A stretch of 64,000 bases of DNA from Ophelia neglecta (lineage: Eukaryota), in contig OZ260661.1 in assembly GCA_965285935.1 (NCBI GenBank), forward strand, positions 146,134,001-146,198,000, read 5' to 3'. Shown here piece by piece: positions 171 through 3,100 of this stretch. Position numbers and translations under genes: made by a program. How positions within the stretch are numbered: the stretch's first letter is position 1; each line of letters starts with the position of its first letter. Under the pieces are notes generated by a model. That model ran no database searches. It saw only the letters and a list, made by a program, of their open reading frames with translations, and was not told the DNA's origin.

Positions 171-3100
171 CTGGAAAAAACATAAACAAATCATAATCAT
201 CATAATCATCATAATCATCATAATCATCATAATCATCATAATCATAATCATAATCATCATCATCACTAGCCTCTATCATCATCATGAAAATACCATAGGT
301 TTACGACCTCCTTGAGAATTAAATGCCAGTCAGCTGCTGGTGATAATCGAAAAAATACTGAAGAGCCCTGCTATTCACCCCCTGACGAGATCAGCATTTT
401 TCTTTGATAGAAAATAGTAACATAGTTTACATGTCTAACCAAACTCTAAACATTTAGCCAGCTAGAAAAATAATTACTGCTCACTTAACCTTTTGACATG
501 TGCATGGTTGTCAACGTGACCTTTGTATTTTAAAATGTAGATAACAAGGCAGTGATGATTTCAATAAATTGTTAAACCCAACCATTTTTAATGCTAACAG
601 GGCACCGTTTGGATTGTATGAACGTTATAATTTCTCATCCACATCGCACAATTGGAGTTGTCTACACAATATTATTGCATGACAGGAAAAAAATGGTTTC
701 CAAGTTTTAAACTTAACTGGTGCCTTTATACACATTAATGTTCCAAGCAATAAAAGCTTGCTTCTTCACAAGTTCAGCATACTTGAATCCCATTTGTTTT
801 TAATATTGTAATGCTCATGGGAGAAAACAAGGGCATGTGGAAAATTGTAGGTTCAATTTTAATCTTACCTGAATACATGTACTTACTTTTGCGGTCTCCG
901 CGGGCGAACTCGATCTCCAGTTCTCGGCCGTAGAAGCGTGTTCTGTCCAGGTTGTACATGGCGTCCTCTGCGTCTCGGGGATCTTCAAACGTGTCTGAGT
1001 TAAGGTCTGTACCACAATGTGTGACATACAATAACAACAACACTTATTCTACGCTAACATGCACAATGACAGCAATCACGTCGACAACCAGACATATCAA
1101 CGGATTGTAGTGAATGATAGTATACAGTAGTATACCAAACAGTAGTATACGAAAACAGTATACTTGATTCTGTACCAGACCGCTCCATCTGGAGGTTATT
1201 GAGGAAGTCCACGTTATGCTGGCATGGCTCTTATCAAACTAAGTAGTATAGAGAAGAGCTTAAAACAGAACTCACCAGGTGTCACCACAATAGGATATGA
1301 TAGACTTGTTGACTTGTCAAACTGTAAACTGCCACAAACAGGAAGTTGAAACTTGGAACAAATATTAACAAAATTTCAGTCCGAAACAAGGCTGGAGATT
1401 CTTGTAAGATTGACCAATAGCATCAAGGGAATCTTTCTCTCTTCACCCAACAACATGTTGACATTACTATGGCAACCAGGATGTTTCATGGACAATGAGA
1501 TCTGTAATGAGCACCATGGCAACCCGTCCACGACCGTGTAGTGACCTTGACACTTGAACCCATGAACGCGACTTTCTTGACCTTGAATTCTTGACTCTTT
1601 TTATCGGAAGCGGTTTCTGTACTCATTTGGTTCTCTTGACTCTTTTTATTGGAAGCGGTTTCTGTACTCATTTGGTTCTCTTGACTCTTTTTATCGGAAG
1701 CGGTTTCTGTTTTCATGCCCAACTTGCCTGTCATATCTTGATCTTGACTTATCGTACTCCCTTAGTAACTTTACTTTTGTGTCTTGATTTCTGATGAAAT
1801 AAAAACAAGAGAAGTATCAGGTTAATGTCCAACACAACGTGAATCTTATCCAACAGGTGGCGTTAGTGAGAACAAAACTACTGGCATCCAATGACTCAAC
1901 ACAACTTTCTACGTATTTCTTGTATTCAGCAAAATATTAGTTTAAAAGACTGGATATTTTCAATCAAAATTAAACAACTTCTAAAATACAATATTGAAGA
2001 ATAAAAAGTTGTGTTCAGTCATTATCAGCCGATTAAATTCTAAATTAAAATGTACCAATGAAAAACTCCATGAAGTGTGAAGCTTCACTAGTACCATGGA
2101 TGTCACCATAGTTACACCTGCTACCTTTTCTACTACTACTAATACCTGTATTACTACCTGTACATGGCGCAGAGAGCCCAACGGTCACTTACTACTTCTT
2201 GCAAAGGGTGGAATTCCCGGACTGTTAAAATTACAGGGACACAGTTGACAAAGGATATTGTACATAGGCGAAGCCGCGAGGCCGCCGGGTATAGTGGTCC
2301 AAGGGCACGTAAACATCAGTTATTGGACCATATTTGCCAAATAAGTTGCGCATTTCTTCAGTTCTACAGAGAGATTCAGATCACAACCAAGGGTAATGAT
2401 AAGAACTAATATCAAATTAAAACATATTCAAAACCGTTCATATTTCTCAAACACTTTGTGCAGTCACTAGATTGTTCTGTGAGCGGCCCAGTGTTTTAAC
2501 CATAGCCTAAATTCCCGGTCAGGCTGTTTGAGAGTGGGCCATTCATTTTAACTTCCAAATCGTCACACTATTACCTGTTCCGTCAAACAATATCTCAAGG
2601 ATTTTCTAAACATCCCCTGATCAAACCATTTGTAGATACAATTTTATGCTGGGGTTTCCTCCCAATCCGTCTATTATGATTAACGTTTCTGAGCATTCTG
2701 ATTGTGGCCTCCAGGCAGTAGGGCTCTGGCCGGACAGAACTCCTGGCTAAAACACTGAGCCCAGTCTCAGAAACTTACTGTTACTTCAAGTGGATTTGAA
2801 AAGGTATTCGCCCAGACCATTTTAAACTTGCCAAAATAATATAAATGGTTACATGCACTATAATTGCAGCAGTCCCACTTAACACTACATAATTGTTTTT
2901 ATAATAATATAATATCAAGTACGATGAACTTTTTTGTCTTTTGCACTTTACAAAAATCACCTGTCTAAACGTTTAAACCAATTTGTCTGAATACAATAAC
3001 CCTGGAAGTCTTGAAGTCAATGTCGTTTCATAAATTTAAATAATTTTGTGTACACCATTTTCAGGGTGTAGCGCTGACTATGGACAACTTATCTTGAACC

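Follow-up and report, generated by a model that had tools for sequence, protein, structure and literature searches.

Introduction

Control of SR protein levels by the minor spliceosome, and through it control of the whole SR family, is best studied in the SRSF10 module, which has been described so far in mammals. In mammalian SRSF10, the minor donor of exon 2 is followed downstream by a major donor, and the stop that separates the two lies less than 50 nt from the junction; exon 3 opens with a major 3' splice site and carries an enhancer at nucleotides 17–60 (PMC7244321, PMC8522700, PMC8329584). A minor 5' splice site was also reported in mammalian exon 3 (Meinke et al. 2020, eLife; PMC7244321), and splicing of exon 3 to exon 4 yields NMD substrates (review, PMC8522700). 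The published SRSF10 motifs are AGAGAV and AAAGACAAA (PMC8522700). Other systems to be considered are the USSE of SNRNP48 (U11-48K) and RNPC3 (U11/U12-65K) (Verbeeren et al. 2010, as reviewed in PMC8329584), the prospero twintron of Drosophila, and the poison exons of SR protein genes (Lareau et al. 2007, as cited in PMC7244321).

The DNA studied here is a stretch of 64,000 nt from Ophelia neglecta (contig OZ260661.1, positions 146,134,001 to 146,198,000), referred to as the window and numbered from its first letter. A preliminary description, made from the sequence alone, had placed in it an SRSF10-like gene whose AT-AC intron would hide an exon entered by the major spliceosome and left by the minor one. 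The locus was compared with orthologous loci and with mRNA contigs from other species.

Materials and Methods

For the orthology searches the exons were queried singly, by reference, and 41 groups of orthologous loci were compared; individual loci and contigs are cited by their L numbers. L039 and L044, whose exon-2 peptide is identical to the mammalian one and which are possibly human or vertebrate, were left out of all comparisons. The Saccoglossus locus contains a run of N, which was left as is. Donors were rated by means of a simple position-weight score. MAFFT, when applied to the exon ends, misaligned the ATATCCT motifs.

Results

Host gene and AT-AC intron

The exon peptides matched proteins named SRSF10 or SRSF12 in Saccoglossus, Capitella, corals and vertebrates, and the exon-2 peptide was 70–88% identical to the exon-2 peptides of proteins that are named SRSF10/SRSF12 in their sources. 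Judged by these peptides, the host gene is an SRSF10/12 orthologue (Table 1). Many public models of this gene were truncated or mis-joined at the AT-AC intron, a practical warning to genome annotators.

The intron lies between ...AYVQ and FED..., and its branch site precedes the 3' end by about 10 nt. All 41 groups have an intron with a U12-type donor at this codon; its ends are AT-AC in nearly all of them and AT-AA, AT-AG or GT-AG in a few lineages. Orthology and this shared codon bear out the earlier proposal that the intron occupies the position of the AT-AC intron of vertebrate SRSF10. Genes for U11, U12 and U6atac were found in this genome. The DNA runs X1–X3 showed even depth and no splice joints, and the allelic variants listed, 24 fewer than the total, avoid the candidate splice sites.

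Table 1. Features of the SRSF10/12 locus in the window; functional assignments are predictions from the sequence.
Feature	Position	Strand	Remarks
Exon 1	ATG at 4931, end 4867	minus	
GT-AG intron	4866..2364	minus	
Exon 2, first RRM half, ends ...GFAYVQ	2259..2363	minus	Peptide identity
U12-type AT-AC intron splitting the RRM	991..2258	minus	Donor ATATCCTT 2258-2251, branch CCTTAAC 1005-999, AC 992-991
In-frame TAA in exon 2 read-through	2231..2233	minus	ORF 2231..2353; +25 from AT donor, 38 nt before 2192 donor
Candidate major (U2-type) donor GTAAGT	2187..2192	minus	66 nt after AT donor
Putative U2-type acceptor of internal exon, pyrimidine tract ending CAG	1791..1816	minus	AG at 1792-1791
Putative non-coding exon within the intron, counterpart of exon 3 in vertebrates	1299..1790	minus	492 nt; both ends collinear with L010 exon
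CAAG/AAGA-rich cluster, candidate SRSF10-type exonic enhancer	1546..1786	minus	10 CAAG per 200 nt
AATAAA, possible poly(A) signal	1645..1650	minus	One of three repeat copies; unconserved
Second U12-like donor ATATCCTA, putatively closing internal exon	1291..1298	minus	308 nt from shared AC 3' end
Candidate U2-type donor GTGAGT	1270..1275	minus	23 nt after U12-like donor
Exon 4 equivalent, second RRM half, ends ...GDRK	887..990	minus	
Next exon, PGQMR..., opens Arg/Ser/Asp-rich tail	84..170	minus	

Candidate sites and internal exon

All sites listed in the preliminary description were found on the minus strand where it had placed them. The GTAAGT at 2192 agrees with the consensus on the intron side only, and it was rated low by the position-weight score; its exon side is GTA, not AG. 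By the simple score, the acceptor at 1791 was the highest-scoring one of the whole intron; it is located 4 nt before the CAAG block and aligns with the acceptors of L010 and L003. The acceptor of the exon after exon 4, at 172-171, is a candidate target for a splice from 1275. Another interior U12-donor match, ATATCCAG at 1957, is 650 nt from ATATCCTA and outside the internal exon.

The segment 1790-1299 has stops in all three frames, the first at codons 13, 32 and 5. Its CAAG density of 10 per 200 nt, at about 1527-1778, compares with a maximum of 4 per 200 nt in shuffles, and at least 8 CAAG per 200 nt were reached at two places only in 128 kb (both strands of the window). The second of these places, 48197-48411, looks unremarkable. 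Within the cluster lies a tandem repeat (45 nt × 2.7) at 1589-1710; neither the cluster nor the repeat is mentioned in the preliminary description. The exon also has four AGAGAV matches and, near its start, the motif AAAGTAAAGT, which is common to the window, L010, L011, L013 and Saccoglossus.

Recurrence in other genomes

The order acceptor, CAAG-rich exon, ATATCCT[AG] and GT donor was found in the window and in L010, L011, L033 and L050. In these five lineages the exon start is A-rich, the CAAG-rich body measures 242–492 nt, and the GT donor follows ATATCCT[AG] by 14–23 nt; it is a GT[AG]A donor at 15–21 nt in L010, L033 and L050, and a weak GTGTTT at 14 nt in L011. The distance from the terminal site to the intron 3' end is 225–308 nt (5/5), in introns of 663 to 1268 nt. 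Between L033 and L050 the acceptor and the opening 60 nt of the exon are nearly identical, and the remaining intron has diverged. Searches with blastn of the window's exon against the relatives gave short HSPs with E values of 0.04–0.6, collinear in the case of L010.

Over a wider range of lineages, the best acceptor of the whole intron lies 4–12 nt before the CAAG block in eight, and CAAG clusters restricted to the sense strand occur in 18 of the 41 intron groups. The exons hold 133 CAAG against 6.6 expected, in nine of nine, a comparison that is partly circular, as the block helped to set some of the exon limits. Capitella has a donor AAG/GTGAGG at +25, an acceptor and a CAAG block, and in Saccoglossus the acceptor is followed by AAAGGTTAAAGTT and a CAAG block.

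By this comparison the terminal U12 donor is limited to a clade. Capitella, L012 and L047 are among the lineages without it, and GTATCCA-type sites are found in its place in L003, L013 and L002. The position of the U2 donor downstream of the AT donor differs between the window and its relatives: two other relatives have strong donors, at +17 and +169, and the position-weight score detected none after the AT donor in L010, L011 or L012. The proposal that the whole circuit is conserved thus stands in part. An internal exon with its acceptor, CAAG/AAAG body and the pair of ATATCCT[AG] and GT donor recurs in invertebrates, and a CAAG-rich block of this kind is spliced in front of exon 4 in the mRNA of a relative; of the four sites singled out for comparison, the acceptor at 1791 and the two members of this pair are kept in four other genomes, the U2 donor being weak in L011, and the donor at 2192 is not, its position being unconserved and the donor itself missing in three relatives.

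mRNA contigs from other species

In the metatranscriptome mRNA L007/L008, from another invertebrate, a CAAG-rich insert of 331 nt, containing an in-frame stop, sits precisely at the junction of exons 2 and 4. L007 is a full-length mRNA with a normal 3' UTR, in which the internal junctions are unplaced, there being no matching genome; the insert end is without a U12 branch site and without a pyrimidine-AG. The productive mRNA of that species, without the insert, is L030. L026, a single contig whose junction is not exactly placed, reads exon 2, CAAG block and exon 5, without exon 4. Two further contigs, L040 and L041, also lack exon 4 and keep the apparent exon-5 acceptor, and have no clear CAAG block.

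Discussion

A probable decoy exon within the minor intron

The AT-AC intron probably contains a non-coding decoy exon, the invertebrate equivalent of exon 3 in vertebrate SRSF10, with a productive and an unproductive splicing route; we put the probability of this reading at roughly two in three. The sites, their conservation and the inclusion of such an exon in the mRNA of a relative are read in the sequences themselves. In the productive route, the minor spliceosome would join 2258 to 991 and unite the two RRM halves. In the unproductive route, the transcript would read beyond the AT donor into the TAA, and the decoy exon would be entered from the U2 donor at 2192 to the U2 acceptor at 1791. 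The CAAG/AAAG repeats would most likely be bound by SRSF10 itself or by a related SR/Tra2-type factor, giving negative feedback. Two exits may be envisaged. The weakened U12 donor at 1298 could be joined to 991, the AC 3' end that also serves the productive route (major in, minor out); alternatively, the U2 donor beside it, at 1275, could be joined to 171, the next U2 acceptor, with exon 4 skipped. In either product the stop would lie far ahead of later junctions, which should make both of them NMD substrates. We infer in this way the use of the exon in this species, its binding factor, NMD, autoregulation and the coupling to minor-spliceosome activity.

The major-in, minor-out arrangement had been presented as a twist of the invertebrate gene. 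It is not new, since a minor 5' splice site is present in mammalian exon 3 (PMC7244321) and exon 3/4 splicing is described (PMC8522700); as it is shared with mammals, the device appears to be an old one.

A more specific reading can be put forward only tentatively. In many invertebrates the decoy exon may end in a weakened U12 donor ATATCCT[AG] with a U2 donor 14–23 nt further on, so that two successive minor-versus-major decisions would be taken, first at exon 2 and then at the decoy exon. The latter would be a true cassette without a poly(A) site, left through the minor spliceosome (to exon 4) or through the major one (to exon 5, half of the RRM being dropped). If this holds, the SRSF10/minor-spliceosome loop would be at least bilaterian in age and would provide a two-stage read-out of the U11:U1 balance.

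Alternative explanations

It is possible, but unlikely, that the internal exon is real and ATATCCTA at 1298 is not a donor at all but a U11-binding enhancer, USSE-like as in SNRNP48/RNPC3, which would define the exon and activate the upstream U2 acceptor, the exit being through 1275 or a poly(A) site. Precedent exists in the USSE, where unspliced, U11-bound U12 donors activate an upstream U2 3' splice site (PMC8329584). The terminal sites themselves are in keeping with such a role: all five are ATATCCT[AG], whose A or G at +8 mismatches the 5' end of U11 and also U6atac, and a U2 donor always adjoins them. Moreover, the GTATCCA-type sites of L003, L013 and L002 would pair badly with an AC 3' end, and L026 passes from the CAAG block directly to exon 5. 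The USSE, however, consists of tandem U12 donors near the acceptor, whereas here one copy is found, 242–492 nt off, and in L007 the insert runs precisely up to the first base of exon 4, which calls for a donor using the U12-type 3' end.

The same L007 contig bears on the idea that the decoy exon is mainly an alternative terminal exon, cleaved and polyadenylated inside and without any exit splice. In mammals the poly(A) site of exon 3 is dominant (PMC7244321), and an AATAAA is present at 1650-1645. This hexamer, however, occurs in one of the three repeat copies, with no GU-rich sequence after it, and no AATAAA-type signal was found in the exons of L010, L033 or L050. Since such an exon would also leave the conserved donor pair at its end without a role, and L007 has the block inside a full-length mRNA, we regard a terminal exon as improbable.

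Still more improbable is that the CAAG block is never an exon and serves, as an intronic element, to enhance or silence the minor intron itself, the nearby splice-like motifs being incidental. The purine-rich element of the prospero twintron is a precedent (PMC8329584), and in Capitella and in L047 the block extends nearly as far as the branch site and no clear donor follows. Nevertheless, in eight lineages the acceptor that abuts the block is the strongest one in the intron, the donor pair is kept in five, and the block is present inside the mRNAs L007 and L026.

Taken singly, each site is unremarkable to mildly unusual. ATATCCT occurs 0.10 times per kb per strand in the window, which gives about 0.13 expected in the intron, and acceptors as good as 1791 (0.38 per kb) are expected about 0.5 times per intron; the expectation is lower for GTAAGT, about 0.02 in the first 100 nt (0.20 per kb). 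Interior ATATCC-like motifs were not enriched over the 41 intron groups (16 seen on the sense strand, about 20 expected), so that the claim of a terminal U12 donor rests on position and context in one clade. That the set is more than chance follows from the recurrence of the layout across species and not from single-sequence statistics, and an AT-rich intron of 1.3 kb with splice-site look-alikes is hardly credible as the whole explanation when the ordered layout and the motif content recur in independent lineages.

Comparison with known systems

The USSE resembles the present module in having a U12 donor sequence downstream of a U2-type acceptor, a non-productive exon, a splicing-factor gene as host and long-range conservation. 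As described in the review consulted, it differs in being a tandem duplicate, not used as a donor, at a short fixed distance from the acceptor; the ATATCCTA at the exon end is single, and its distance varies across lineages as given above. A relative's mRNA (L007), in addition, indicates real splicing to exon 4. With the prospero twintron the present module shares the nesting of a U2-type intron within an AT-AC U12 intron, with a purine-rich element inside; prospero, however, gives two coding isoforms, whereas the nested route here would give a stop and a non-coding exon. The poison exons of SR protein genes are likewise conserved, stop-bearing alternative exons that lead to unproductive splicing, but those covered by the cited source are flanked by major sites only, while the exon described here is found in a minor intron and has a putative minor donor.

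The closest likeness is with the mammalian SRSF10 module. The AT-AC intron is at the same RRM codon; at the sequence level, the minor donor is followed by a major-type donor, and a stop precedes the latter by less than 50 nt; the intron is predicted to contain a non-coding exon that opens with a major 3' splice site and has a purine-rich, enhancer-like element, also predicted, in its first tens of nucleotides; and its end has a candidate minor donor able to use the exon-4 3' end. Differences are found in the enhancer-like repeats, CAAG-based here and plain GA-rich in mammals, the dominant CAAG motif not being identical to AGAGAV or AAAGACAAA, and in the invertebrate exon being without a conserved poly(A) signal, for which reason exit by splicing may be its main route. 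In the invertebrate exons a U2 donor follows the candidate minor donor by 14–23 nt. Autoregulation and dependence on the minor spliceosome, demonstrated in mammalian SRSF10, are presumed for the invertebrate gene.

The presence of the decoy exon in lophotrochozoan-type genomes, an annelid and a hemichordate would date the circuit to early bilaterians, and would give a concrete reason for keeping this minor intron for hundreds of millions of years. The invertebrate introns, of 0.7–1.3 kb, could serve as compact natural minigenes for U11/U1 competition. What is new here, as far as can be read from the genomes and contigs compared, is an invertebrate member of the known SRSF10 regulatory module.

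Gene structure and the AT-AC intron

The intron that splits the RRM of the SRSF10/12 orthologue is a textbook U12-type AT-AC intron, as it starts with ATATCCTT, carries the branch sequence CCTTAAC close to its end and finishes with AC. A 1,477-nt stretch was single-copy in the 762-Mb assembly, and genes for U12, U6atac and U11 were detected in the genome with scores of 129, 103 and 117 bits, each exceeding its Rfam cut-off. The U12 intron occupies the same position in all 41 sequence groups (58 introns compared), and its terminal pairs are AT-AC in most cases, a small number being AT-AA (L012, L018), AT-AG (L050) or GT-AG (L020); L-numbers designate orthologous loci or contigs from other species.

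Features of the SRSF10/12 orthologue and candidate sites within its AT-AC intron
Feature	Position	Strand	Remarks
Exon 1	ATG 4931, to 4867	minus	
GT-AG intron	4866..2364	minus	
Exon 2	2363..2259	minus	
AT-AC intron, 1,268 nt	2258..991	minus	starts ATATCCTT, ends AC
In-frame TAA	2233-2231	minus	also closes ORF 2231..2353
U2 donor GTAAGT	2192-2187	minus	
Acceptor, pyrimidine tract with CAG end	1791	minus	
U12-like donor ATATCCTA	1298-1291	minus	
U2 donor GTGAGT	1275-1270	minus	
Branch CCTTAAC	1005-999	minus	~10 nt from intron end
Exon after AT-AC intron	990..887	minus	
Exon opening Arg/Ser/Asp-rich tail	starts 170	minus	

An LDB (LIM-domain-binding) orthologue is located directly upstream of the SRSF10 gene (7899-18615, minus strand); in Capitella, an LDB gene likewise neighbours SRSF10, the two genes there being convergent (L091 13670-15701). 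The interval from the LDB 3' end to the SRSF10 promoter contains a tRNA-derived-looking stretch (...ggttcaaatcctg..., ~5760-6060, minus strand), probably a SINE. A G19 run is found at 5410-5428. A microsatellite of ATCATAATC and ATCATC units (181-285) lies just upstream of the acceptor for the exon starting at 170; DNA contigs break there.

Candidate sites and alleles in Ophelia neglecta

All sites listed in the preliminary description were found in place, and the segment 1790-1299, proposed as a cassette exon with stops, showed early stops in all three frames. The donor at 2192, considered strong, is perfect on its intron side, but its exon side reads GTA rather than AG. Two features of the segment had not been mentioned, a 45-nt tandem repeat of 2.7 copies (1589-1710) and a dense CAAG cluster. 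Taken one by one, the candidate sites are hardly beyond chance: ATATCCTW was seen 8 times in the window against 7.0 expected (~0.1 within the intron), GTAAGT occurs at 0.20 per kb per strand, and acceptors matching the quality of that at 1791 at 0.38 per kb. The CAAG cluster is rarer, at least 8 CAAG per 200 nt being reached at only two places in 128 kb (both strands), one of them 1527-1778. Thus, the case must rest on cross-species comparison.

Three runs, all from one sample and none on record as RNA, cover the stretch; compared over 1-5000, they are DNA, since depth was even across introns and exons and splice joints were zero. Inside the intron, they contain single-base differences at 1522, 1532 and 2171, deletion alleles of 8 nt at 1555 and 3 nt at 1033, and an allele lengthened by 149 nt at 1914-1919. 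This insertion is carried by contigs from each of the three runs and lies in the part of the intron that separates the downstream donor from the acceptor of the decoy exon. None of the candidate splice sites was hit by the differences listed (24 further exist), which is weak evidence.

Orthologous loci

Searches were run exon by exon, using as handle the exon-2 read-through ORF (...QYPL...) reported on genomic contigs by prokaryote-style gene callers. About 100 clusters reading ...GFAY[VI]Q/YP..., that is, with ATATCC at the same codon, were obtained by word-based and exhaustive searches, 80 loci by a scan of metagenome contigs, and the genomic loci of Capitella teleta, Saccoglossus kowalevskii, Helobdella robusta and Porites evermanni, together with several contigs, by exact-protein look-ups. 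L039 and L044 were left out, their peptide being mammal-identical and possibly human.

Public models of this gene (proteins P0155, P0056, P0096, P0106, P0136, P0153, P0154) are often cut off at the AT-AC intron or forced via nearby GT/AG sites, and mis-joined public models hold a few spurious residues where the true junction belongs. Capitella (L091) has a second SRSF10-like first exon ~8 kb off on the opposite strand (55-117 minus; 8001-9960 plus), so this species may have two SRSF10-like paralogues. Worm-associated metagenomes contain two peptide types, with the CAAG block in only one.

Conservation of the internal exon and its splice sites

The sense-strand CAAG cluster was detected in 18 of the 41 groups, where it far exceeded shuffled sequences and also exceeded the reverse motif. 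In eight lineages (the window, L010, L011, L013, L033, L050, L012 and L047) the acceptor with the highest score anywhere in the intron is situated 4-12 nt before the cluster. Nine exons contain 133 CAAG, where the remaining sequence of their introns would predict 6.6; the figure is in part circular, since certain exon limits were chosen with the help of the block. An AAAG(T)TAAAGT element within the first 25 nt past the acceptor is common to the window, L010, L011 and L013, and L033 and L050 are nearly identical over the acceptor and ~60 nt of exon, while the remaining intron has diverged. The hemichordate Saccoglossus presents the same arrangement, an acceptor and AAAGGTTAAAGTT ~20 nt later, and in Capitella ATATCCT is followed by AAG/GTGAGG 25 nt on, a strong acceptor and ~20 CAAG in ~220 nt.

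A strong U2 donor downstream of the minor donor is present in the window (+66), Capitella (+25), L013 (+17) and L047 (+169). None was found in L010, L011 and L012, whose acceptors are only 62-213 nt away from the minor donor; the entry donor is the weakest link of the module. Strong pyrimidine-AG acceptors were also observed shortly after the minor donor in L003 (+81), L011 (+69), L012 (+62), L018 (+67) and L038 (+79), and at 60-80 nt past the U12 donor, as in these five lineages, an acceptor would leave too little room for a nested U2 intron. The early acceptor of L003 aligns with that at 1791 (E 0.039).

CAAG-rich exon ends of the type ...(T)A/ATATCCT[AG] were found in the window, L010, L011, L033 and L050, with a U2-type donor (GTGAGT, GTGAGTAAG, GTAAAG, GTAATG) 15-23 nt past ATATCCT in four of the five lineages and a weak candidate, GTGTTT, 14 nt past it in L011. 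In all five, 225-308 nt separate the terminal ATATCCT from the AC 3' end, although the introns are 663 to 1,268 nt long. When the introns of the window and L010 were aligned locally, three of the five top alignments were collinear, covering the acceptor/exon start and the exon end with ATATCCTA. Capitella, L012 and L047 lack the terminal ATATCCT, and GTATCCA-type sites replace it in L003, L013 and L002; interior ATATCC motifs showed no enrichment across all introns compared. Of the four sites for which alignment across relatives had been proposed, the acceptor is conserved, the entry donor is present in some and absent in others, and the exit pair is conserved in one clade.

Position +8 of the terminal donors is A or G in all five lineages, and almost always T in the main donors. 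U11 of this genome starts with AUAAAAGGGCC and U6atac contains AAGGAGAGA; A or G at +8 is a mismatch in the pairing of both with the donor, which predicts an exit donor of lower strength than the main U12 donor.

Transcripts from other species

L007, identical to L008 (probably the same sample), is an mRNA with exons 1 and 2 spliced, in which a 331-nt CAAG-rich insert with an in-frame stop starts at the U12-type donor and is followed by exon 4, all later exons and the 3' UTR. The same gene in another sample (L030, 92.7-98.9% identical) is insert-free and joined CA/ATTTGAAGAT. The last base of the insert directly precedes exon 4, and its end lacks both a U12 branch site and a pyrimidine-AG; it is thus not a retained intron end but reflects the joining of an internal donor to the U12-type 3' end. 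L007 is, in a relative, the cassette isoform predicted in the preliminary description. The U12 intron donor in this species is GTATCTTT.

In L026, from another species, exons 1 and 2 are followed by read-through sequence, a long block of TTCAAGA repeats and then directly exon 5, exon 4 being missing. This fits an exon left by its U2 donor and joined to the following U2 acceptor (the 1276>170 route), in a single contig whose junction is only approximately placed.

Two transcript-like contigs of one species, L040 (1-2820) and L041 (1-3119), read through the ATATCCTT donor of exon 2 into ~2.1 kb with two more ATATCCTA, and continue from exon 5 onward with the acceptor apparently attached; exon 4 is nowhere in either. 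Exons 1 and 2 are spliced in L040, and L041 keeps the end of intron 1.

Interpretation of the internal exon

On this comparative evidence, the segment 1790-1299 is interpreted as exon 3 of the invertebrate SRSF10/12 gene, acting as a decoy: an mRNA that includes it would be unproductive. As the TAA precedes any exon-3/exon-4 or exon-3/exon-5 junction by >500 nt, spliced-through products should be NMD substrates, and the CAAG/AAGA repeats are the prime candidate for feedback binding by the protein. The supposed conservation of the circuit in this invertebrate holds for its architecture; use is shown in relatives only.

It is unlikely, if conceivable, that ATATCCTA acts as a USSE-like exon-definition signal, binding U11 and remaining unspliced; the L007 junction points to splicing at such a site. 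The probability is lower that the decoy exon is terminal with a poly(A) end: the poly(A) site of exon 3 is dominant in mammalian SRSF10 (PMC7244321), whereas no conserved poly(A) signal was found in the decoy exon of the nearest relatives, and the single AATAAA of the exon at 1790-1299 sits in one repeat copy. On these grounds, splicing is a likelier principal mode of exit here than in mammals, and the emphasis first placed on it may, in this limited sense, be correct. There is slightly less to be said for the CAAG block as a purely intronic enhancer, a CAAG-rich insert being part of the L007 mRNA, and very little for chance, with acceptor and cluster adjoining in eight lineages. A decoy exon left by splicing is the reading preferred.

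Comparison with the mammalian SRSF10 module

Exon 2 of mouse and human SRSF10 has a minor 5' splice site upstream and a major one downstream (Meinke et al. 2020, PMC7244321). Exon 3 carries a major 3' splice site, a GA-rich SRSF10-dependent enhancer at nt 17-60 and a seldom used minor 5' splice site (PMC7244321), so that major entry with minor exit, presented in the preliminary description as a twist of this invertebrate, already belongs to the mammalian layout. Transcripts with exons 3 and 4 spliced are possible NMD targets, and the published SRSF10 binding motifs are AGAGAV and AAAGACAAA (review PMC8522700). No description of the module in invertebrates was found in the literature searched; details that are possibly new are the U12 and U2 donors side by side and the repeats of CAAG type. 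The TAA at 2233-2231, 38 nt before the 2193 junction, resembles the mammalian stop, which is placed <50 nt before the major junction (PMC7244321).
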